This document shows positions 13,536-62,853 of a stretch of 64,000 nt of DNA, piece after piece (the first letter of the stretch is position 1; the number at the start of each line of letters is the position of its first letter). Made by a program: the position numbers and the translations under genes. The notes under the pieces are model-generated. The model did not search any database. It was not told the DNA's origin and saw only the letters and a program-made list of their open reading frames with translations. The DNA comes from Zootoca vivipara (lineage: Eukaryota): positions 22,196,001 through 22,260,000 of the forward strand of contig NC_083280.1 of the NCBI RefSeq assembly GCF_963506605.1, in the 5' to 3' direction.

Positions 13536-15592
13536 CAAAAAGTAAAAAAGCTACCAAAGAGGACCAAGCACACCTGAAAGAAGCAGTCACCTCCTCTTCT
13601 CCTGAGAAAGATTTCTCATTTGCAAAGTTTGCATCTCCATTTAAAAGAGAGGCCATCGAAGCTGGCATTTATGTGAGCTCACCTGTGTATGAAAAGCCGG
13701 AAACCCTAGACTTTGCCATTGGGATAGCTGAAACCTATTTCTCCACCGAGTATTGGAAAAGTAATCTTTCCAGCGAGTCTGTTCAACCAAAGGAGGAACT
13801 TGAAAGGGACAAGAATGAAGGTATATGTTGCATGGGTCAAAAGGTCGATGATGCTCTATTTTGCAAAGAGAGAGAACTAGTAGCTGGAAATTCTCTTTCT
13901 CCAGGACAACAAGAAGTAACTAGCATTAGATCTCATGCAGTAGTAAATAGTACTATAACCAATTCCCCACTACCTGATGTATCTTCACCTACCTGTAGTG
14001 ATGTCCGTGACTTTCATTCCATACCAGCCATACAAGATAGTGACATTTCTCATCTGATCAGTGAGGTCTCTTTAACAGACGAGAGTGATGTGGGCAGTTC
14101 TGTCTCAGCACTGATAGGACAGTTTGATGTCACAAATGACCAGACTAAGTTGACTGTTGTTCCAAGTCCTCCTGGAATTAGCAAAAAGATTGACAATAGG
14201 AAGCCTGCACATGTACCACAGATGTCTCCAAGTGATCAGAATACATCTTTTGACCACAAGTCTCCTAGTGTAATGCCAAAAATTACTATGATATCAACCC
14301 CTCAGACAACAGAGTGTTCACTGTACACAATTATCCATGAGGCTTCGCTTTCTCCAGCCTCTCACCAAGCATCAATTGGCAAACCTCCTTGCAAGGACAC
14401 AACGTATGTTGAAGAAGATACTTGTCCGGTGTTTTCTTGCATTTCACCTGGGCTAAATGCAAGCACTAAAAGGAAGTGTGGAGCCAACTGGAACTCTCTT
14501 AGCAATAGCAACTCTTGCATCTCTGACAACTCAGATTTGGAACATACAATAGTTGTCCCTTTCACTTGTGTAAATTCTACAGGCAGCAGCCTAATGGAAG
14601 TTGATGGAGAGCTGCAGGACCTATTGATAACTGCCTATGAATATAAGAGAGAAGATATGAGCCAAGTTGCTTCTCCTCTGAAACTTAAGCATAATCAGGA
14701 CACTCTGTACTATGACAGTTCAGTCTGCAGAAACCTAACTAGTGAGGATCTCTCCAACACCAACCTACTTGAAGACTTCAAGTTCAGGAGCAAGAAGAAT
14801 CAATATCTTCCTTACCCAGAACATCAGTGTGTTGATCTTTTGTACCAAAATTATTTGCACATTTCAGACACCAAAAATGAATGGTTAAACATCTCTCCTA
14901 CAGGTAACATGGAGAACTCTCCTGCTCTTAAGCATTCTCTGCCTTCTCCCTCAGCTCAAAAACAACCAAGTCCTTGTAAATCCAAGAGCCTTGGAGACTT
15001 AACATCAGAAGACATCTCGTGCAATTTTGAAAGCAAGTACAAGTATATCAGCAGAGGTTTCATTACATCTGGCATGAGAGACAAGATGGTGACGGCTCTG
15101 AAGGCTAAGAGACCACAGGCTACAGATTCCCTGACGGAACAGTTACGAAAGCTAGTGTCCTTTGATCAGGAGGACAGCAGCTGCCAGTCATTTTGTAACA
15201 AGCAGGATGACGATTGCCCTAAAATGTTGGTCAGAAAACTGTCGTCCAGGAGTCAGAGCAGAGTGAGAAACATTGCTAGTCGTGCCAGGGAGCGACAAGA
15301 AGCCAATAAGCAGAAACTTTCTAATGCTAGCAGTAATGTAGCAGACATAGTCCTTAGAAATAAGCCTCTTGTCCCTCCTCACATTATCAATAGACATTCC
15401 ACTGGCTCTTACATAGCAAGCTATCTGGATAACTTCAATACAGACAATCTGGTGGACCGAGGGGTTCCGGAGGGTGCATGCACATCATTGCGCTATGCGT
15501 ACCATGACCGGTTTTATACAGATGACTCTCTTTTAGAGGCCAAGCCAAGCGAAGACGATAAACCAGAAATCTATTTTCTCCTGAGACTGTAA
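13536..15592 (+). CDS. PLCH1: PLCH1 terminal coding exon (long Ser-rich tail, ends …DDKPEIYFLLRL*)
   Basis: tatag| acceptor at 13535, in frame with ORF 13673-15592. Conserved blocks PSPCKSKSLGDLTSEDI, LTEQLRKLVSFDQED and LVRKLSSRSQSRVRNIASRA, plus the C-terminal PEIYFLLRL that I recognise as PLCH1. Confidence 0.93.
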
Positions 15593-41991: not shown

Positions 41992-42126
41992 NNNNNNNNN
42001 NNNNNNNNNNNNNNNNNNNNNNNNNNNNNNNNNNNNNNNNNNNNNNNNNNNNNNNNNNNNNNNNNNNNNNNNNNNNNNNNNNNNNNNNNNNNNNNNNNNN
42101 NNNNNNNNNNNNNNNNNNNNNNNNNN
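41992..42126. other. Assembly gap (135 N)
   Basis: Run of N. Confidence 1.
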
Positions 42127-43007: not shown

Positions 43008-43690
43008 TCATAGAATCCTAGAGTTGGAAGAGAGCACAAGGGCCATCCAGTCCAACCCCCTGCCAAGCAGGAAACACCACCAAAGCATTCTTGACATATG
43101 CCTGTCAAGCCTCTGCTTAAAGACCTCCAAAGAAGGAGACTCCACCACACTCCTTGGTAGCAAATTCCACTGCCGAACAGCTCTTACTGTCAGGAAGTTC
43201 TTCCTAATGTTTAGGTGGAATCTTCTTTCTTGTAGTTTGAATCCATTGCTCCGTGTCCGCTACCCTGGAGCAGCAGAAAACAACCTTTCTCCCTCCTCTA
43301 TATGACATCCTTTTATATATTTGAACATGGCTATCATATCACCCCTTAACCTTCTCTTCTGCAGGCTAAACATACCCAGCTCCCTAAGCCGTTCCTCATA
43401 AGGCATCGTTTCCAGGCCTTTGACCATTTTGGTTGCCCTCCTCTGGACACATTCCAGCTTGTCAATATTCTTCTTGAACTGTGGTGCCCAGAACTGGACA
43501 CAGTACTCCAGGTGAGGTCTGACCAGAGAAGAATACAGTGGTACTATTACTTCCCTTGATCTAGATGCTATACTCCCATTGATGCAGCCCAGAATTGCAT
43601 TGGCTTTTTTAGCTGCTACATCACACTGTTGACTCATGTCAAGTTTGTGGTCTACCAAGACTCCTAGATCCTTTTCACATGTACTGCTCT
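43008..43690 (-). mobile_element. CR1 LINE 3' fragment
   Basis: Highly similar to 20978-21665; EKDLGVLVD…LVRPHLEYC. Confidence 0.95.
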
Positions 43691-44592
43691 CAATTTGTTT
43701 TTCAACTCCTCCTGGGCACAATAGTCGCAGAATCTCAACAACAACAAATTTTTTTTGAGCTACTTTTAAGGATATTCGCCAGAAAATCAATACATCTGGG
43801 TTTTTTTGATATCGGGAATTCTGCCCGGACGCGATTTCCGACGGACGAATCCAAGATATGTCTGGGAAGTCCCAGACATACAACAGGGATACTGAACCCA
43901 GTAGGTCCAATGCCATCACCTTCTTGCCCCACTACTTCCACCCACAGAATTTCTAATTTTCAACCCTAGAACTGGCTATCACTGGTGGAAGAACCACCAG
44001 TGGTAGTTTTACACCCATGGAACTATTCAAGGGCCTAGCAGAGGTGTCTGTGGTAGATGTCCTCCTTCATTGACAAAACTATCTGTGGAGAGGCATCTTC
44101 ACTTCTTAAGCATCTGAAATCACTGTCACTGGTTCTGGGGAATTGGATTGCAGTGTTTATTTACTTGCAGATTTTGCTGGCTCTTCCACTACGTTCAAAG
44201 AGGTTTCCTACATCTTCTTCTGTGAAATATTTTTTTCCTGCCTCTGCAGGGAGATGATTGGCTTATGCTTATGTTTTAACTTTTTCTGTTGTCTGTGTCT
44301 AATTAAATCAGGAGAAAAGTGTTCAGACTTAATGGATGCAGTTATTAAGGTATTAATGTCTTGCTTTCCACTACAGAAGACATTTGAGACCCATGGTATG
44401 GGTGGTGCTAGCTTAGAGCAAGAGCATTATTCAATTCTGAAACTCCCTTGAATAACAAGTTCCTTCGCTGAGTTCCTTTAAACTTTGGTTTCGCCCTCAT
44501 CCGGGATTCTAAATACTCTGTTTCCTGATTTAATATACATTCTAAAGTCTGCTTTGTGAAATCCCAGGAACCTGCTTACAGCGTTGCTGAAC

Positions 44593-46168
44593 ATGAACTT
44601 GAAATTGACTTATCTTCTCCTAGCTCTATGCACAGCCATCATATTCATCTTGGTCTGGGCTTTCCAAAACAGAGGAGGGAAGCCCATGCTTTGCGACAGC
44701 CATCTTCAGGAGATGGGATGGGAGGAAAGAGGCCATGGAATCTACAGCCAGGTATTTGCTGATTTAACTCCGGAAGAGATCATGGAAGTGAAGATCTACC
44801 TGCAGTACAACCTGGGGGTGCCATTGGTAGAACCTCCTCAAGCCAAACCATCGGACAACTGCATTTTTTCTATCACCCTTCAGCTTCCTCCCAAAGCTGA
44901 AGTGCTGCAATTCTTGGACCACCAAGGGACCAGGCCCTCGCGGCAAGCTCTGGCTGTACTCCATTTTGGAAACCAGGAGCACCCAAATGTCACAGAGTTT
45001 GTGGTAGGTCCTCTTCCAAAGCCAACGTACCACCAAGATGTCACAGTGCAGAAGTATGGAGGGAAGTTGCCTTACTACAGAAGGTTTTTTTTGGAGAATG
45101 AGCTGAGAGAGATCCATACTTTCTTGAGGAATAGGGAATACCCCAAGGATCCAAACTTTATGCAGAAAGTGCTTTATTACAATGGAAGCAAGTATGGATA
45201 CTCCTATGGATTACCACCTGGACTAAAATCAGGAGACCGGAAAATCTGGGTTGCTCATTTCCAGAATGTCCCTGGTAGTTACCTGCATCCAGTAGGATTT
45301 GAAGTCCATATGGATCTCAGCAGCCTAGACGTTTCTCATTGGAAGGTGCTAAAAGTCTTCTATAATGGACAGTACTTTGAGGACATGGAAGATATTGAGA
45401 GACAATTCATTTCAGGACATGTTAAAGTAGCCAAGGTCAAAAAGGCTCCTTTGGATGGAGGCTATTCCTCACTGAAGCAGAGGGTTCCCCACCAGAGACT
45501 AGGCCCCTTGTACTATGAACCTCGTGGTCCCCGCTACCGCATCTGGAATAACCAGGTTTTCTTCATGTCCTGGAGTTTTGCCTTTGGCATAGATGCCAAT
45601 AGGGGGCCACGTATCTTTGATGTAAGGTTTAAGGGTGAGAGGATAGTTTATGAGTTAAGCTTGCAAGACGGAGGTTCCATCTATGGCTCCAACAATCCAG
45701 CGTCAATGCTGACCAGGTACATGGACTTAAGCTTTGGCATTGGTTCAAGTGGCTCCACTCTCACCCAAGGTGTGGATTGTCCTTACCTGGCTACTTATTT
45801 GGACAGGCACTATTTTCTTGATTCCTCGTTGCCTGTCACTCGCAAACACTCTATCTGCATCTTTGAGCAGAATGCTGAGGTCCCTGTGCGAAGACATTAT
45901 GACCGCTCAGAGCCTCCGTTTTACGGAGGGTTGGTCGATTCCGTTCTTGTCTTTAGGTCCATATCTTCAGTTGCTAATTATGATTATGTTTGGGATTTTA
46001 AATTTCATCAAAATGGAGCTGTTGGTGTTGCGATTCATGCAAGTGGGTACATTCAATCTGCTTTTTATTTTGGCGATGCCTTGGAATTTGGAAACAGAGT
46101 TGAAGAGTGGGCACTGGGAGACATTCACACTCACAACATTAATTTCAAGGTGGATATGGACATTGGTG
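44593..46168 (+). CDS. AOC3: AOC3/AOC2-like copper amine oxidase, first coding exon, copy 1 (divergent variant)
   Basis: N-terminal hydrophobic anchor, VFADLT, GLKSGDR, catalytic Asp in RYMD, TPQ motif NYDY and Cu-ligand HTH. Ends at DIG-G|gtaagt, the position of the AOC3 exon 1 boundary. Confidence 0.9.
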
Positions 46169-47074
46169 GTAAGTCTATGCCTCTTTTGTAACTTTTATGG
46201 ATTGCAGTGATTTCTATTGATGGTAGCGGCTGACTTGCTGCCAGCTAATAGCTGTTTTTTAAGTGGTTCTGAGGTTATTTTGTTTCCCAGTTCTGCAAAT
46301 GGACCCATTTTCATGTTCCATGGAGTATTCATGAGTATACGTTTTCCCACCTCACCTGGCAGAATGCTGCATCATCCTAAGATGCAGAAAATAGGTGAAG
46401 CGTGTGGTGTATGTGTAGGAGGGAATTGTTGTGTGAGAAAGTTTAGGCCGATTCTGGAACCTTGGAGACACAGAGGCATGTTCTGAACACAAGTTGTGTC
46501 AGGGTTTCCCCCCTGGATGCCTAATAGAGAAGCACAATCTGTTCGTGTGTTAATGCTGTGCACCCACCCATCCTATGCTCAGGTTCCATATATGTGTAAA
46601 TAAAACCATACATTCTATAGACATCACCATCTCCACTGACCTTCATTCCATGGAAACAGAACCCTGGGGAAGCGCTTGGCATTCATGGAGTCTCTCCTCA
46701 AAATAGGTCTTGAGGGAGGCAAATCCATGTCTGCTTCTAATTCATTCAATGAATTATGAATGCACATCATTGTCAAAGTATTATATGGGCCCTTTGGGGC
46801 AACCGGTTGAGCCCTGCATATTTTAAGACCAAGGTCCATCTAGTGGCAGGCAGGCGGCGGGGGCCGGTCACTTCACTTTTGGTAGTGGAACAGAGCAATA
46901 TTCACAGCAGGGTTAAAAGGCTTCCCATTGAATAGATTCGGGAGTGAAATTAAAACACAATAGTACATTCTGAGAGCATTTTGTTGTGATTACTTTATAT
47001 TAATCAGAGAAGTATATGCTCCTCAGAAATAGATGCACATGAGCTAATACATAATTGATGGAGATTGCCCCCAT

Positions 47075-47251: not shown

Positions 47252-50115
47252 GCCCCCATGTAAGTTAGGTTCATTCATTTCAAGGGGTCTTCTCTGAGGA
47301 AATCTTAGTTTAATGCCAACCGTTGAACGCTACCTTGCTCTCTTTTTTATATGAACTACTTTTTCTCATCCATAGTCAATTTGTAGACATGATTTACCTA
47401 TTTAATTTGTCATGTTAAAGTCCCATCTTTCTTCCAAGATTAGGGGGTTGCACTAGATGACCCTCGGGGTCCCTTCCAGTTCTATGATTCTATGAAACTC
47501 AATCTAAATTGTGTACTTGGCATTCTGCAAAAATCTTCCGTCTAGCCACTTGACCAAGATCTCCCTCATTTTCCAGTAAGGGCTGCTTTGTTGCCATGGG
47601 CAGCCATCCAGGGAGGCCCGGGAGCCATGGGACCAGCCAGTAGCCAGGGCTGAAGCCTAAGGGTTGTATTCAGTGCAGAACAAAGGACATGCTAGACATC
47701 CGGGGCAAAGACCAAGACAACAACAAAGGACTAAACAAAAGAAGGGACTAAGGTGTAACCAGTAATACTGGGGCACACCAAAAGATCTTGTTATTTGAGC
47801 AAAGCTTAGCAAGAAATAGTCTTTCCTGTCCAGGATAACCCAATGGCTAGTTTGGAGTCAGCCCATGGCCTGAAGGTACTTCATTAAGAAACTCAGACTT
47901 GCCATTCAATGGTTCACCACATGGGAGTATTGCACCGAGATCGAGCAGTTCCTGACAATTACGTGTCTTCAGGTCATGTCTTGAGGAATCCATCCACTCT
48001 GCTTTCTCATTCAATTTTAGAGTAGCTGCTGTTTTAAAAAGAATTCAAATACTACTGCTTCTTTGGCTATGACCCCCTGAAATCCTGCTGATCCAGGACA
48101 ACAGAGAAGGATAAATCTCTTCTCCACATAAAATAGTTTCCTTTTATGGCGATGATTGTTTCCCACCAGAGGGTGGTAAAACCACTTGAGATCCGAACTG
48201 CCATTGAATTACATAAAGGCATACTATGCAGATTTCTTCACGACCTTTCAGAAGCTGTGAAAGTGCTAAGGGCACAATCCAAAGAAAGCTCTTGACTTTA
48301 ATGAAATCTAAGCATGAGTGTGCTGTCTCCATTGAAATCATCCAGCGGTCCTTTACCTCTTCCTTTGACCTTTACCTTTACCTATATGCACTGTAGATTT
48401 AAAGCACGTTTAAAGTATTTCCTTCCTCCCGAGGAATTCTGAGAGCTGTAGTTTGTTGTGGGTGCTGGGAAATGGTAGTTGAGATGGACAAACTACAGTT
48501 CTCAGGATTCTAAGTTAAGGCAGTGCCATGCTGCTTTCACTTTCCTCTTCTCAACTCAATCTTCCTCTGCCCCCCGGGGGATGTACATGACAAGATACTT
48601 TCATTCCCCCTGTATTGGAGTAAGATTCAACTGCCAATCAAACTGGCTTCAGCATGTGCTTTGGGGCTGGGTGCCATCTTGTCCTTCACCTCAGGCAGCG
48701 AAATGTCTTGAGCTGACCCTGCCACTCACGGGGCTTGTTAGGCGAATCTCACCCAGTGATTTGCCAGGATTCAATAAGTTAGCTACTTTTAATTTCTCAG
48801 CTCTGAATTCTGGCAACCTGTCCCTTGCAAATCTTGTTTTAAGCTGCAGGGCACAAGCAAAACCAGCCAGGTAACAATTCAAGAATTACCAGAACATCAA
48901 ACTTGCTGTGCCTTTCTCAGAAATTGTGTGGATAATTCAGTGGTTAATTAATTTAAGGCCAGTGCTATGCAGGCTTACTGACAAACACAGGACTCTTGCT
49001 GGCTAGTGTTTGGTGTCTCCTGATGCTTCCTTCCTTGCAGTCTCCTGCCTCTCTCTCAATGATCTTTGATGAACAGCCTTTCCCTCCCAACACATGACAT
49101 TCTCTCTGACCCAGATATTCAGCATATAAGGAAATTAGAGGCTCACTGCGCAGCTCAGCTTCAGTGTTTTCTCCAGTCCACAGAAGAATAGGACTGGAAA
49201 TGAAAATCAAGTGTAAATGCATGGAAGCCGATACGCAAGTCAAAACAACAGTGTGAGATCCACACCAGACATTTTAAGCACGATGATACCACTTGGACAG
49301 TTATAGAGAACCCTTGGAACTGATTTAGGATGGATCATAATAGCTCAGTGGTAGCACATCTCCACATAGGGCCGGAAGCAAATCTCCACCTGAGATTACT
49401 TATGCCAGCTCCAAGATGTTATATAGAGAAAGCCCCATTGTGGGCCTCTCTGTTGAATGAATGAGTCTTGAGCCTCCAGAATGTCTAATATTGAACCCTA
49501 AGAGTGCATGGTGGTGGTGAAAGAACCACTCTACATCCATGGAACAATTCACGGGCATAGCTGAGGTGTTTGTGGCAGACGTGCTCTTTCATTGGCAAAG
49601 CTCCGTCAATAGACAGGCACTTCCATACCCTCCTAACCAGCTCCAGTTACTGTTCTGAGGGTGTGGCCTCAGTAAAGTTAAGTGCTGCATCAGCTAGAAG
49701 ACTCAACCACTAGGAAGTTCTGCTTTTTTTCTTGCAAAGCTTCCTCTTCCAAACATTTTTTGCACCCTCTACATAAAGAAGATTGCTTAAGAGTGGTTTG
49801 TTGTATCTCGGTAGGCTGCATCTAACTCAATTAGGAACAAAGGTGTTCAGAGGACATGACATAACAGGTTATCAAGGCTTGAAGGAAAATATCACTGCAT
49901 TCCTATTTACAGAAACATTGAGCTGCATCATACCGTCGGTGGTTGCTTAGATGAAAAATATTACTGATGTTTTGAAGCTCACTTGCATAGCAGGTCTTTC
50001 CCCGAAACTTTGGTTTCACCCTCATCCGGGATTCAAATACTCTGTTTGCTGATTCAATCTGCATTCTACAGTCTGCTTTGTGAAATCCTAGGAGCCTGCT
50101 TACAGCGTTCTGAAC

Positions 50116-51691
50116 ATGAACATGAAATTGACTTATCTTCTTCTAGCTCTATGCACAGCCGTCATATTCATCTTGGTCTGGGCTTTCCAAAACAGAGGAG
50201 GGAAGGCCATGCTTTGTGACAGCCATCTCCAGGAGATGGGACTGGAAGAAAGAGGCCATGGAATCTACAGCCAGGTATTTGCTGATTTAACTCCGGAAGA
50301 GATCATGGAAGTGAAGATCTACCTGCAATACAACCTGGGGGTGCCATTGGTAGAACCTCCTCAAGCCAAGCCATCGGACAACTGCATTTATTCTATCACC
50401 CTTCAGCTTCCTCCCAAAGCTGAAGTGCTGCAATTCTTGGACCACCAAGGGACCAGGCCCTCGCGGCAAGCTCTGGCTGTACTCCATTTTGGAAACCAGG
50501 AGGACCCAAATGTCACAGAGTTTGTGGTAGGTCCTCTTCCAAAACCAATGTACCACCAAGATGTCACAGTGCAGAAGTATGGAGGGAAGTTGCCTTACTA
50601 CAAAAGGTTTTTCTTAAACAATGAGTTCAAAGAAATCCTTAATTTCCTGAAGAACAAAGAATACCCCAAGGCTCCAAACTTTATGCAGAAAGTACTATAT
50701 TACAATGGAAGCAATCTCAGAAACTTCCGTGCATTACCACCTGGACTAAAATCAGGAGACCGGAGAATCTGGGTTGCTCATTTCCAGAATGTCCCTGGTA
50801 GTTACCTGCATCCAGTAGGATTTGAAGTCCATGTGGATCTCAGCAGCCTAGACGTTTCTCATTGGAAGGTGCTAAAAGTCTTCTATAATGGACAGTACTT
50901 TGAGGACATGGACGATATTGAGAGACAGTTCATTACGGGACATGTTAAAGTAGCCAAGGTCAAAAAGGCTCCTTTGGATGGAGGCTATTCCTCACTGAAG
51001 CAGAGGGTTCCCCACCAGAGACTAGGCCCCTTGCACTATGAACCTCGTGGTCCCCGCTACCGCATCTGGAATAACCAGGTTTTCTTCATGTCCTGGAGTT
51101 TTGCCTTTGGCATAGATGCCAATAGGGGGCCACACATCTTTGATGTAAGGTTTAAGGGTGAGAGGATAGTTTATGAGTTAAGCTTGCAAGATGCATCTGC
51201 CATCTATGGCTCCAACACTCCAGCGGCAATGTTGAACAGATTCATGGACCTAAGCATTGGCATTGGTTCAAGTGGCTCCACTCTCATCCAAGGTGTGGAT
51301 TGTCCTTACCTGGCTACTTATTTGGACAGGCACTATTTTCTTGATTCCTCGTTGCCTGTCACTCGCAAAAACTCTATCTGCATCTTTGAGCAGAATGCTG
51401 AGGTCCCTGTGCGACGCCATTATGACCGCTCAGAGCCTCCGTTTTACGGAGGGTTGGTCGATTCTGCTCTGGTCTTCAGGTCCATATCTACAGTTGGTAA
51501 TTATGATTATATTTGGGATTTCATGTTTCATCAAAATGGAGCTGTTGGTGTTGCGATCCATGCAAGTGGGTACATTCAATCTGCTTTTTACTTTGGTGAT
51601 GCCTTGGAATTTGGAAACAGAGTTGAAGAGTGGACATTGGGAACAATTCACACTCACAACATTAATTTCAAGGTGGATATGGACATTGGTG
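50116..51691 (+). CDS. AOC3: AOC3/AOC2-like amine oxidase first coding exon, copy 2
   Basis: Intact 525-codon frame with GNYDY and IHTH. Donor g|gtaagt at 51692. Confidence 0.9.
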
Positions 51692-51826: not shown

Positions 51827-52315
51827 AGAATCATAGAATCATAGAATGGGGGACTTGGAAGTGACTCCAAGGGTCCTCTAGTCCAACCCCCTGTAATGCA
51901 GGAGCCAAAGCTATTTAATCCCTGACAAGTGGTCCTCCAACTTCTGTTTTAAAACCTTCAAGGAAGGAGAGCCCCCCAACTTTCAAGATGGTGCATTGAA
52001 CTGTTGAACATCTACTCTCAAGAAATTCTTCCCATTGTTTATCCATAATCGCCTTTCCTGTAATTTGAATTCATTGGTTTGTTTCCTATCCTTTGGAGTA
52101 CCAGAAAACAAGCTTTCTGCATCCTCCATGTGACAGCCCTTCAGATACTTTTAAGAAGGCTATCGTATCTTCTCTATGTCTCCTTTCTTCCAGGGTAAAC
52201 CTATCCAACTCCCTCAACCATTCCTCATAAGCCTTGGTTTCCAGACCCTTGATCATCTTCATTGCTCTGCTCTGCACACATTCCAGTTGTCAATGTCCTC
52301 CTTAAACTGTTGCTC
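51827..52315 (-). mobile_element. Older CR1 3' fragment, co-duplicated in every tandem unit (also ~55550-56038, ~59273-59760, ~62984-63465)
   Basis: agaatcatagaatcat tail; degenerate QSRAMKMIKGLE…YEEWLREL. Confidence 0.85.
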
Positions 52316-53838: not shown

Positions 53839-55414
53839 ATGAACATGAAATTGACTTATCTTCTTCTAGCTCTATGCACAGCCGTCATATTCATCTTGGT
53901 CTGGGCTTTCCAAAACAGAGGAGGGAAGGCCATGCTTTGTGACAGCCATCTCCAGGAGATGGGACTGGAAGAAAGAGGCCATGGAATCTACAGCCAGGTA
54001 TTTGCTGATTTAACTCCGGAAGAGATCATGGAAGTGAAGATCTACCTGCAATACAACCTGGGGGTGCCATTGGTAGAACCTCCTCAAGCCAAGCCATCGG
54101 ACAACTGCATTTATTCTATCACCCTTCAGCTTCCTCCCAAAGCTGAAGTGCTGCAATTCTTGGACCACCAAGGGACCAGGCCCTCGCGGCAAGCTCTGGC
54201 TGTACTCCATTTTGGAAACCAGGAGGACCCAAATGTCACAGAGTTTGTGGTAGGTCCTCTTCCAAAACCAATGTACCACCAAGATGTCACAGTGCAGAAG
54301 TATGGAGGGAAGTTGCCTTACTACAAAAGGTTTTTCTTAAACAATGAGTTCAAAGAAATCCTTAATTTCCTGAAGAACAAAGAATACCCCAAGGCTCCAA
54401 ACTTTATGCAGAAAGTACTATATTACAATGGAAGCAATCTCAGAAACTTCCGTGCATTACCACCTGGACTAAAATCAGGAGACCGGAGAATCTGGGTTGC
54501 TCATTTCCAGAATGTCCCTGGTAGTTACCTGCATCCAGTAGGATTTGAAGTCCATGTGGATCTCAGCAGCCTAGACGTTTCTCATTGGAAGGTGCTAAAA
54601 GTCTTCTATAATGGACAGTACTTTGAGGACATGGACGATATTGAGAGACAGTTCATTACGGGACATGTTAAAGTAGCCAAGGTCAAAAAGGCTCCTTTGG
54701 ATGGAGGCTATTCCTCACTGAAGCAGAGGGTTCCCCACCAGAGACTAGGCCCCTTGCACTATGAACCTCGTGGTCCCCGCTACCGCATCTGGAATAACCA
54801 GGTTTTCTTCATGTCCTGGAGTTTTGCCTTTGGCATAGATGCCAATAGGGGGCCACGTATCTTTGATGTAAGGTTTAAGGGTGAGAGGATAGTTTATGAG
54901 TTAAGCTTGCAAGATGCATCTGCCATCTATGGCTCCAACACTCCAGCGGCAATGTTGAACAGATTCATGGACCTAAGCATTGGCATTGGTTCAAGTGGCT
55001 CCACTCTCATCCAAGGTGTGGATTGTCCTTACCTGGCTACTTATTTGGACAGGCACTATTTTCTTGATTCCTCGTTGCCTGTCACTCGCAAAAACTCTAT
55101 CTGCATCTTTGAGCAGAATGCTGAGGTCCCTGTGCGACGCCATTATGACCGCTCAGAGCCTCCGTTTTACGGAGGGTTGGTCGATTCTGCTCTGGTCTTC
55201 AGGTCCATATCTACAGTTGGTAATTATGATTATATTTGGGATTTTATGTTTCATCAAAATGGAGCTGTTGGTGTTGCGATCCATGCAAGTGGGTACATTC
55301 AATCTGCTTTTTACTTTGGTGATGCCTTGGAATTTGGAAACAGAGTTGAAGAGTGGACATTGGGAACAATTCACACTCACAACATTAATTTCAAGGTGGA
55401 TATGGACATTGGTG
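53839..55414 (+). CDS. AOC3: AOC3/AOC2-like amine oxidase first coding exon, copy 3
   Basis: Intact and nearly identical to copy 2 (GPRIF vs GPHIF). Same donor. Confidence 0.9.
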
Positions 55415-57561: not shown

Positions 57562-59137
57562 ATGAACATGAAACTGACTTATCTTCTTCTAGCTCTATGC
57601 ACAGCCGTCATATTCATCTTGGTCTGGGCTTTCCAAAACAGAGGAGGGAAGGCTATGGTTTGTGACAGCCATCTTCAGGAGATGGGACTGGAAGAAAGAG
57701 GCCATGGAATCTACAGCCAGGTATTTGCTGATTTAACTCCGGAAGAGATCATGGAAGTGAAGATCTACCTGCAATACAACCTGGGGGTGCCATTGGTAGA
57801 ACCTCCTCAAGCCAAGCCATCGGACAACTGCATTTATTCTATCACCCTTCAGCTTCCTCCCAAAGTTGAAGTGCTGCAATTCTTGGACCACCAAGGGACC
57901 AGGCCCTCGCGGCAAGCTCTGGCTGTACTCCATTTTGGAAACCAGGAGGACCCAAATGTCACAGAGTTTGTGGTAGGTCCTCTTCCAAAGCCAATGTACC
58001 ACCAAGATGTCACAGTGCAGAAGTATGGAAGGAAGTTGCCTTACTACAAAAGGTTTTTCTTAAACAATGAGTTCAAAGAAATCCTTAATTTCCTAAAGAA
58101 CAAAGAATACCCCAAGGCTCCAAACTTTATGCAGAAAGTACTATATTACAATGGAAGCAATCTCAGAAACTTCCGTGCATTACCACCTGGACTAAAATCA
58201 GGAGACCGGAGAATCTGGGTTGCTCATTTCCAGAATGTCCCTGGTAGTTACCTGCATCCAGTAGGATTTGAAGTCCATGTGGATCTCAGCAGCCTAGACG
58301 TTTCTCATTGGAAGGTGCTAAAAGTCTTCTATAATGGACAGTACTTTGAGGACATGGACGATATTGAGAGACAGTTCATTACGGGACATGTTAAAGTAGC
58401 CAAGGTCAAAAAGGCTCCTTTGGATGGAGGCTATTCCTCACTGAAGCAGAGGGTTCCCCACCAGAGACTAGGCCCCTTGCACTATGAACCTCGTGGTCCC
58501 CGCTACCGCATCTGGGATAACCAGGTTTTCTTCATGTCCTGGAGTTTTGCCTTTGGCATAGATGCCAATAGGGGGCCACACATCTTTGATGTAAGGTTTA
58601 AGGGTGAGAGGATAGTTTATGAGTTAAGCTTGCAAGATGCATCTGCCATCTATGGCTCCAACACTCCAGCGGCAATGTTGAACAGATTCATGGACCTAAG
58701 CATTGGCATTGGTTCAAGTGGCTCCACTCTCATCCAAGGTGTGGATTGTCCTTACCTGGCTACTTATTTGGACAGGCACTATTTTCTTGATTCCTCATTG
58801 CCTGTCACTCATAAAAACTCTATCTGCATCTTTGAGCAGAATGCTGAGGTCCCTGTGCGACGCCATTATGACCGCTCAGAGCCTCCGTTTTACGGAGGGT
58901 TGGTCGATTCTGCTCTGGTCTTCAGGTCCATATCTACAGTTGGTAATTATGATTATATTTGGGATTTCATGTTTCATCAAAATGGAGCTGTTGGTGTTGC
59001 GATCCATGCAAGTGGGTACATTCAATCTGCTTTTTACTTTGGTGATGCCTTGGAATTTGGAAACAGAGTTGAAGAGTGGACATTGGGAACAATTCACACT
59101 CACAACATTAATTTCAAGGTGGATATGGACATTGGTG
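57562..59137 (+). CDS. AOC3: AOC3/AOC2-like amine oxidase first coding exon, copy 4
   Basis: Intact, with private changes (AMVC, PKVEV, VTHKN). Same donor. Confidence 0.9.
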
Positions 59138-61277: not shown

Positions 61278-62853
61278 ATGAACATGAAATTGACTTATCT
61301 TCTTCTAGCTCTATGCACAGCCGTCATATTCATCTTGGTTTGGGCTTTCCAAAACAGAGGAGGGAAGGCCATGCTTTGTGACAGCCATCTTCAGGAGATG
61401 GGACTGGAAGAAAGAGGCCATGGAATCTACAGCCAGGTATTTGCTGATTTAACTCCGGAAGAGATCATGGAAGTGAAGATCTACCTGCAATACAACCTGG
61501 GGGTGCCATTGGTAGAACCTCCTCAAGCCAAGCCATCGGACAACTGCATTTATTCTATCACCCTTCAGCTTCCTCCCAAAGCTGAAGTGCTGCAATTCTT
61601 GGACCACCAAGGGACCAGGCCCTCGCGGCAAGCTCTGGCTGTACTCCATTTTGGAAACCAGGAGGACCCAAATGTCACAGAGTTTGTGGTAGGCCCTCTT
61701 CCAAAACCAATGTACCACCAAGATGTCACAGTGCAGAAGTATGGAAGGAAGTTGCCTTACTACAAAAGGTTTTTCTTAAACAATGAGTTCAAAGAAATCC
61801 TTAATTTCCTGAAGAACAAAGAATACCCCAAGGCTCCAAACTTTATGCAGAAAGTACTATATTACAATGGAAGCAATCTCAGAAACTTCCGTGTGTTACC
61901 ACCTGGACTAAAATCAGGAGACCGGAAAATCTGGGTTGCTCATTTCCAGAATGTCCCTGGTAGTTACCTGCATCCAGTAGGATTTGAAGTCCATGTGGAT
62001 CTCAGCAGCCTAGACGTTTCTCATTGGAAGGTGCTAAAAGTCTTCTATAATGGACAGTACTTTGAGGACATGGACGATATTGAGAGACAGTTCATTACGG
62101 GACATGTTAAAGTAGCCAAGGTCAAAAAGGCTCCTTTGGATGGAGGCTATTCCTCACTGAAGCAGAGGGTTCCCCACCAGAGACTAGGCCCCTTGCACTA
62201 TGAACCTCGTGGTCCCCGCTACCGCATCTGGGATAACCAGGTTTTCTTCATGTCCTGGAGTTTTGCCTTTGGCATAGATGCCAATAGGGGGCCACACATC
62301 TTTGATGTAAGGTTTAAGGGTGAGAGGATAGTTTATGAGTTAAGCTTGCAAGATGCATCTGCCATCTATGGCTCCAACACTCCAGCGGCAATGTTGAACA
62401 GATTCATGGACCTAAGCATTGGCATTGGTTCAAGTGGCTCCACTCTCATCCAAGGTGTGGATTGTCCTTACCTGGCTACTTATTTGGACAGGCACTATTT
62501 TCTTGATTCCTCGTTGCCTGTCACTCGCAAAAACTCTATCTGCATCTTTGAGCAGAATGCTGAGGTCCCTGTGCGACGCCATTATGACCGCTCAGAGCCT
62601 CCGTTTTACGGAGGGTTGGTCGATTCTGCTCTGGTCTTCAGGTCCATATCTACAGTTGGTAATTATGATTATATTTGGGATTTTATGTTTCATCAAAATG
62701 GAGCTGTTGGTGTTGCGATCCATGCAAGTGGGTACATTCAATCTGCTTTTTACTTTGGCGATGCCTTGGAATTTGGAAACAGAGTTGAAGAGTGGACATT
62801 GGGAACAATTCACACTCACAACATTAATTTCAAGGTGGATATGGACATTGGTG
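61278..62853 (+). CDS. AOC3: AOC3/AOC2-like amine oxidase first coding exon, copy 5
   Basis: Intact, with changes FRVLP and DRKIW. Same donor. Confidence 0.9.

Follow-up and report, generated by a model that had tools for sequence, protein, structure and literature searches.

Divergent substrate-channel blocks in tandem AOC3-like first exons of the lizard Zootoca vivipara

In the UGT1A locus, variable first exons encode the substrate-binding half of the enzyme and the shared exons its cofactor half. The L and M opsin genes of primates are gene-converted paralogues in which islands are preserved at the spectral tuning sites. Here we describe a locus that can be set beside both, an array of five tandem copies of a large open AOC3-like first exon on the + strand of a 64,000-nucleotide stretch of the Zootoca vivipara genome (RefSeq assembly GCF_963506605.1, contig NC_083280.1, positions 22,196,001 to 22,260,000 of the forward strand). 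This whole stretch is called the window, and coordinates are positions within it.

For the enzyme family itself, positions 173, 177, 180, 447 and 761 have been held responsible for the differences in inhibitor binding that set rodent VAP-1 apart from the human enzyme (section 6.1 of the review PMC7144023). Other parts of that review describe position 212 as conserved within each mammalian subfamily and as thought relevant to substrate choice (PMC7144023), and X1 and X2 of the cofactor motif T/S-X1-X2-N-Y-D are reported to track substrate preference (PMC7144023 and PMC12058724). The literature searched yielded no paper on alternative first exons in the copper amine oxidase family or on its expansion in lizards.

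Our preferred reading, to which we assign a probability of about 0.6, is that copy 1 and copies 2-5 represent two old first-exon types of a squamate-specific AOC3-like enzyme, whose substrate-channel blocks have been kept by selection against gene conversion. The evidence points to, but does not prove, a specialisation of the channel.

The array and its first exons

Each of the five copies consists of 525 intact codons followed by a donor site, in which the last exon base G precedes GTAAGT (5/5 copies). The homologous first exons thus stand in tandem, each with its own donor, and no constant exons lie between them in the window.

44593..46168, + strand: copy 1, type A first exon, intact frame and donor, 525 codons plus one base
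50116..51691, + strand: copy 2, type B first exon
53839..55414, + strand: copy 3, type B first exon, 3 bases unlike copy 2
57562..59137, + strand: copy 4, type B first exon
61278..62853, + strand: copy 5, type B first exon, with A206V within the second of the four patches described below

At least five first-exon types could be distinguished in lacertids among the cluster members of the best matches:

Type A: copy 1
Type B: copies 2-5 and older Zootoca models
Type C: Zootoca isoform X2 and one Podarcis raffonei protein
Type D: one older Zootoca model and one Podarcis lilfordi protein
Type E: full-length proteins, the one of this assembly and those of Podarcis

The exon codes for a membrane anchor, for the N2 and N3 domains and for the opening half of the copper amine oxidase catalytic domain. 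Pfam families PF02727, PF02728 and PF01179 (Cu_amine_oxidN2, N3 and Cu_amine_oxid) all score above their cut-off in it, and HMMER aligns it with human VAP-1 at E 1e-147 and with bovine serum amine oxidase at E 1e-154. The cofactor motif, aligned to human T467-D472, reads SVANYD in copy 1 and TVGNYD in copies 2-5. Two copper ligands, H512 and H514, are present in all five copies; the position of the third falls beyond exon 1, and FLHIPH in the constant part (exons 2-4) of the Zootoca database proteins aligns with human H684. Because exon 1 covers only positions 4-221 of the 407 of PF01179 and the third copper ligand lies in the constant part, exon 1 alone cannot make an active enzyme. By percent identity, the exon stands closer to a squamate-only 'AOC3-like' set (63-93%) than to a canonical lacertid AOC2/3-type protein, P0072 (54%).

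Copies 2-5 form a young 3.72 kb repeat with mutual differences of 1-6 residues, and copy 1 is older than this repeat. Among copies 2-5, 18 codons vary, 8 of them with replacements and 10 silently. This replacement to silent ratio of 8:10, compared with about 3.6 to 1 expected, and the intact frames and donors are signs of purifying selection. At six of the 18 variable codons (38, 143, 217, 340, 469 and 494), one or two of copies 2-5 show the copy 1 state, which suggests ongoing exchange between the types. Between copies 3 and 4, and between copies 4 and 5, the exons are slightly more different (about 1.0%) than the spacers (about 0.8%).

Channel residues and mosaic divergence

Copy 1 and all of copies 2-5 are fixed for different residues at 44 of the 525 positions, and copies 1 and 2 differ at 46 residues and 88 bases. 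The sequence-only reading of this DNA had quoted four patches of substitutions and matched them, by a manual alignment, to human AOC3 residues 173/176/177/180, 210-212, 384/389 and 469. The four pairs of patches are all in the sequence where they were said to be, at codons 164-177, 198-207, 358-381 and 458-465 (window 45082-45987), and this mapping coincides exactly with an HMMER alignment to VAP-1 (1PU4/1US1/2Y73), repeated with the full-length Zootoca protein. The alignment to the human sequence is gap-free in the relevant stretches, and a nearby two-residue gap is placed alike against the bovine enzyme and the full-length Zootoca protein. The following human positions are affected:

Human F173: E168N, copy 1 E, copies 2-5 N
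Human Y176: L171F, copy 1 L, copies 2-5 F
Human L177: R172K, copy 1 R, copies 2-5 K
Human D180: H175L, copy 1 H, copies 2-5 L
Human T210: Y203N, copy 1 Y, copies 2-5 N
Human M211: S204F, copy 1 S, copies 2-5 F
Human T212: Y205R, copy 1 Y, copies 2-5 R
Human Y384: Y376F, copy 1 Y, copies 2-5 F
Human F389: F381I, copy 1 F, copies 2-5 I
Human L469: A461G, copy 1 A, copies 2-5 G

The catalytic residues are unaffected: D378 (human D386), Y463 (the tyrosine of the topaquinone cofactor, TPQ471) and H512/H514 (H520/H522) are identical in all five copies, as had been claimed. Three of the five positions implicated in VAP-1 inhibitor binding in the part of the review cited above (173, 177 and 180) differ between copy 1 and copies 2-5.

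The location of the channel was judged by sequence alignment to the solved human structures, combined with a residue list from the review. The list holds the 18 exon-1 residues named as ligand or channel contacts of human VAP-1 in sections 4 and 6 of PMC7144023; drawn from parts of the review, it may be incomplete. Some of the section 4 residues were reached through term searches, partly with the residues of the sequence-only reading, and the review's 'Phe368' was dropped, a conservative choice, since the human sequence has Ala368. On this list, 10 of the 18 contact residues are changed, as against 34 of the 507 others (odds ratio 17, Fisher p 1.6e-7), so that, as far as sequence alignment resolves it, the differences are not spread at random relative to the channel. 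They are also clustered along the exon, with a dispersion matched by 0 of 10,000 permutations. The four divergent blocks delimited below amount to 17.5% of the exon and contain 11 of the 16 channel residues that are not catalytic (p 0.002 when the blocks are placed at random), a count matched by 9 of 525 circular shifts. The earlier statement that the copies differ 'mainly' at channel residues is thus correct by segment, 31 of the 43 differences in residues 40-525 lying inside the four blocks, but not by residue, as only 10 of the 44 fixed differences fall on named contact residues.

Comparison of copies 1 and 2 beyond the exon revealed how unevenly they have diverged. Their similarity extends from 43945 to 46225. 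The upstream 648-base flank is 68% identical (420/615 bases), identity dropping farther upstream of the copy 1 ATG (43945-44472), and past 46225 the aligned identity of 236/512 is at the level of unrelated sequence. An identity of no more than 68% in the flanks shows that the duplication is old. In the exon and at its edges, we delimited the features listed here, with pS and pN the proportions of synonymous and nonsynonymous sites that differ and omega the ratio of nonsynonymous to synonymous divergence.

44473..44592, + strand: homogenised stretch of some 120 bases upstream of the ATG in which copy 1 closely resembles copies 2-5 and which may, and probably does, comprise the 5' untranslated region and core promoter
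45079..45210, + strand: block 1, codons 163-206, holding the equivalents of human F173, Y176, L177, D180, T210, M211 and T212
45190..45210, + strand: seven consecutive changed codons, 200-206, KYGYSYG in copy 1 against NLRNFRA, equivalent to human N207-T213
45667..45735, + strand: block 2, codons 359-381, with the equivalents of human A368-A370, Y384 and F389; 13/69 bases differ, pS 0.26
45940..46002, + strand: block 3, codons 450-470, around the cofactor motif; 10/63 bases differ, pS 0.33
46111..46122, + strand: block 4, codons 507-510, A..D against T..T; 5/12 bases differ, type C state
46169..46225, + strand: donor GTAAGT and the first 57 intron bases, 54/57 as in copy 2
The four blocks together (codons 163-206, 359-381, 450-470 and 507-510): 92 codons, 57/88 base differences, pS 0.354, pN 0.169, omega 0.40
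The rest of the exon: 433 codons, 31/88 base differences, pS 0.051, pN 0.016, omega 0.31

Block 1 differs from copy 2 at 29/132 bases (pS 0.42, pN 0.18) and is near type D, with 3/44 residues different in a hand count on the alignments. Codons 200-206 within it carry 9 nonsynonymous and 1 synonymous changes (omega about 3.7), too few for significance, and of the 525 columns, 204 is the most variable and 205 the third most variable among 53 squamate relatives. A compensated frameshift behind these seven codons was ruled out, the changes falling at first and second codon positions in the same frame. Block 2 equals type C at all diagnostic sites and leaves the catalytic Asp codon 378 (45724-45726) unchanged. 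In block 3, the X2 residue (human L469) is Ala against Gly, and the cofactor Tyr is codon 463 (45979-45981). Block 4 is closely followed by the HxH copper ligands (codons 512-514, 46126-46134), which do not vary.

At silent sites the blocks have diverged as far as the flanks (pS 0.35 vs 0.32), and silent differences lie nearer to replacement differences than chance predicts (p 0.011). Flanks much older than the exon are thus combined with a mosaic of silent divergence inside it. These features are those of an old duplicate with an exon that gene conversion later made uniform outside four islands, and not those of recent adaptive point changes. A fresh diversification of copy 1, as the sequence-only reading implied, is contradicted, the differences being old block haplotypes that escaped conversion and copy 1 itself a hybrid.

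The hybrid nature of copy 1 appears from the diagnostic positions of the types. It agrees with type D at every such position in residues 32-274, which include the entrance helix and the 201-205 loop, and with type C at every one in residues 340-517, which include the blocks of the catalytic Asp and the cofactor motif; a few changes of its own come on top. Against types B and C, 14 residues are private to copy 1, and at least six (W43, H130, R163, D186, K200 and Y307) are found in no other type examined. From these alignments, copy 1 is a recombinant, of type D to about residue 307 and of type C from about residue 340. A single switch in a stretch alike in all types explains the pattern, which fits an origin by unequal recombination or by a long conversion tract. 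The Zootoca annotations themselves differ, an older one listing types B, C and D and that of this assembly types A, B and E (P0122, P0123, P0132, P0138-P0142); either polymorphism of the array or a difference between assemblies could account for it. The columns of the exon also conflict in the trees that they give, copy 1 being nearest to type C by the block columns and nearest to type B by the remaining ones.

Proteins of the same type were compared between Zootoca and Podarcis. Of 16 channel sites, 1, 1 and 2 were unlike, and of the block residues 4-11%. Between types of one species the figures rise to 3-12 channel sites of 16 and 7-34% of the block residues, and they are smallest for the recently derived B-E pair. 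Outside the blocks the relation is not of this kind: types within a species differ by 3.0-7.4% and orthologues by 5.1-8.4%. Zootoca and Podarcis raffonei share the type C patch NFAYYHG without a change. Position 212 is Tyr in types A and D, Arg in B, His in C and Pro in E; X2 is Ala in A and C, Gly in B and E, and Asn in D. The islands coincide with functional sites and are kept within a type across species, as judged on proteins and with types that are partly defined by the blocks. On this comparison, the block haplotypes predate the split of Zootoca and Podarcis and have been conserved since, while the rest of the exon evolves in concert. Blocks alike within a type and very different between types are what functional specialisation predicts, not what relaxed constraint does, and they support the former.

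In a set of 53 AOC3-like proteins of squamates, variability is highest in the channel columns (2.44 vs 0.84 bits, p 3e-9), the equivalents of M211, T212, F173, Y394 and L177 ranking 1, 3, 5, 6 and 7 of 525. The channel contrast is weaker in the canonical sauropsid clade (1.35 vs 0.87 bits).

Proposed selection against conversion and competing explanations

The course of events begins with an old duplication. Gene conversion then made the exon uniform, reaching from about 120 bases ahead of the ATG to the first 57 bases of the intron, but four short blocks escaped it and retained their old divergence at silent and replacement sites alike. By alignment to the human enzyme, these blocks encode the walls of the channel, namely the helix at the entrance (human 173-180), the loop 207-213, the strand with its loop at the catalytic Asp (368-389) and the cofactor motif (467-469). 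Selection would remove those conversion events that erase a type-specific channel, because the types would oxidise or bind different amines. Each exon would work by splicing to one shared set of exons 2-4, which would supply the third copper ligand.

As to this shared set, in NCBI models the Zootoca first exons of types B, C and E are joined to one constant part, with 233/233 residues identical, and in isoforms X3, X5 and X6 of the gecko Paroedura picta the exon-1 part is 54-77% identical and the constant part 100%. Snakes have complete, diverged genes instead, and automated models also fuse neighbouring genes in birds. The automated models suggest one shared constant exon set downstream of the first exons, which may serve as alternative first exons. 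The sequence-only reading had likened the copies to variable exons, and for this likeness the evidence consists of automated gene models, with constant exons absent from the window and reads absent from the RNA runs.

Several points weigh against selection on the channel. Nei-Gojobori counts between copies 1 and 2 did not reveal positive selection (omega 0.41 for the exon, 0.40 for the blocks and 0.31 for the remainder). From work on the human and rodent enzymes we infer that the amines accepted or bound differ between the types. The 233-residue constant part has no match anywhere in the window, even at E 50 and word size 2 (best E 0.22); the array reaches the window end, and there are no exons 2-4 within 19 kb of array. 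In three Zootoca RNA sequencing runs (about 6% of each, tissues unknown), no reads fell on the exons, and among the database entries listed with the exon none is recorded as RNA; a fourth run gave a few short contigs on copy 2 that are DNA-like in appearance. The types were assigned partly from the blocks, so that conservation within a type is not a fully independent observation, although its contrast with the non-block columns is, and the comparison between genera was made on protein sequences. Lastly, a barrier to conversion arising from fast, weakly constrained channel loops could give the same mosaic without selection on substrates. The claim of diversification for substrate specificity is thus borne out in part, by the channel enrichment and the conservation within types across genera; it finds no signal in the ratio of nonsynonymous to synonymous change, and the blocks are old instead.

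RNA reads were found only on a short repeat at 47442-47478. To either side of it they run on into sequence that is unrelated, so that their source lies in other copies of a dispersed repeat. An inverted partial match of the same repeat lies at 51831-51892.

The barrier just mentioned is the strongest competitor of our reading, though we consider it unlikely. Gene conversion requires local identity, and weakly constrained, rapidly evolving channel loops would block it locally, in which case the match between blocks and channel would reflect low constraint. In line with this, the blocks have an omega under 1 (0.40), not far from that of the rest (0.31), and the columns concerned are the most variable across squamate relatives and lie above average in the canonical clade (1.35 vs 0.87 bits). 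Weak constraint nevertheless predicts the opposite of what is seen within types, where the channel changed between genera at 4/48 sites compared with about 6.6% of residues outside the blocks, and where the type C patch NFAYYHG is unchanged from Zootoca to Podarcis raffonei.

Somewhat less probable again is that the array consists of orphan exons, partial and non-functional duplicates of exon 1 kept open by conversion from one functional exon that stands beside exons 2-4. The missing exons 2-4 in the 19 kb of array and the missing RNA reads agree with this, as do the current NCBI models, which are 501-residue read-through products, and the frequency of exon-1-only models in sauropsids. Conversion from another type cannot, however, maintain type-specific blocks, and yet the blocks are conserved between genera. 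Copies 2-5 are poor in replacements (8 vs 10, with about 3.6 to 1 expected), all donors are intact, and in older NCBI models exons of types B and C are continued by the constant part.

Recent positive selection in place, by which adaptive channel replacements would have arisen in copy 1 or in the ancestor of copies 2-5 after a recent duplication, is improbable. It would account for the 9 replacement and 1 silent changes of codons 200-206, a ratio that is not significant, and for the derived state of both types relative to the outgroups; against it, the silent divergence of the blocks is as high as that of the flanks (pS 0.35 vs 0.32), and the block sequences are already present in other exon types and in Podarcis. 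An assembly artefact, in which copy 1 is a false join of types D and C through a near-identical middle and the copy number of type B is wrong, can be given just as little weight: the two Zootoca annotations do list different type sets (B, C, D vs A, B, E) and the switch point does lie within a stretch alike in all types, but the channel differences between types remain in separate database proteins and other genera, and the 14 private residues of copy 1, at least six of them in no type examined, fit a real, separately evolving exon better.

Neighbourhood of the array and comparison with known systems

Upstream in the window, a 639-codon frame at 13673-15592 (+ strand) is the large last coding exon of PLCH1 (phospholipase C eta-1), with 63-67% identity to squamate PLCH1 fragments. 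In Crotalus horridus, a PLCH1 model is numbered beside three AOC-like genes on one contig, and one Anolis AOC-like protein carries a PLCH1 isoform name. The AOC3-like cluster adjoins PLCH1 across squamates, as the window and the Crotalus horridus and Anolis records agree. Nearer to the array, upstream of copy 1, 43008-43482 is 71% identical to 51839-52310 in the spacer after the type B exons and looks like the tail of an older repeat unit without its exon; a run of N at 41992-42126 occupies the place where that missing exon might have been.

The database models of the window exons have 501 residues. They begin at Met32 and run on past the donor into intron sequence, with GGKSMPLL as their last residues. 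Since they begin at Met32, the membrane anchor of the full frame (44593-44685 and the same part of copies 2-5) is lost from them. Models of about 520-590 residues that resemble a first exon only exist in many sauropsids (Elgaria, Tiliqua, Gekko, Dromaius, Falco and Chelonoidis), and two isoforms of Athene cunicularia are alike in exon 1 (98.9%) and less so in the remainder (85%). Orphan or shared first exons of the AOC3-like family may be widespread.

A wider, tentative proposal, which we hold to be possible but doubtful, is a cassette system of lacertids, perhaps of squamates, with several channel-specific first exons spliced to one constant half of the catalytic domain and their blocks reshuffled by gene conversion and unequal recombination, as in the hybrid copy 1. 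Mixed dimers could then multiply the specificities, because the enzyme is a dimer in which an arm of the partner lines the channel. Variation of the channel that sets substrate or inhibitor preference was so far known from comparisons of whole genes or of species. In the lizard, a single locus holds several versions of the channel exon, distinct at those positions and homogenised elsewhere, one of them rebuilt from two. Should these exons be expressed with a constant part in common, a second enzyme family, after UGT1A, would diversify its substrates through alternative first exons, and the locus would provide natural block-swap variants for dissecting the amine specificity of VAP-1-type enzymes.

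Like the lizard types, the mammalian AOC2 (RAO), AOC3 (VAP-1) and AOC4 (SAO) are tandem paralogues with an unchanged catalytic core. Their preference follows the channel, X1/X2 and position 212 according to PMC7144023 and PMC12058724, and it is at these very positions that the lizard types differ. Each mammalian gene is complete, with four exons, whereas the lizard locus multiplies the first exon only; its types, unlike AOC2/3/4, are kept uniform elsewhere by gene conversion, and they belong to a squamate-specific clade beside PLCH1. The differences of rodent VAP-1 from the human enzyme separate orthologues of different species, while those described here separate exons of one locus.

With UGT1A, the array shares tandem homologous first exons with their own donors, the absence of constant exons between them and a specificity placed in the variable part, and the automated lizard models join different first exons to one identical constant part. 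The split of the lizard enzyme differs from that of UGT1A in falling in the middle of the catalytic domain, and the lizard case is known from exons and automated models. The L and M opsins offer the likeness of old flanks around a homogenised coding sequence in which islands of old divergence sit on specificity sites; they belong to another protein family, and the lizard blocks have in addition been reshuffled between types, as in the hybrid copy 1. The locus can be seen as a variation on known themes, the channel specialisation of amine oxidase paralogues and gene conversion with preserved islands.

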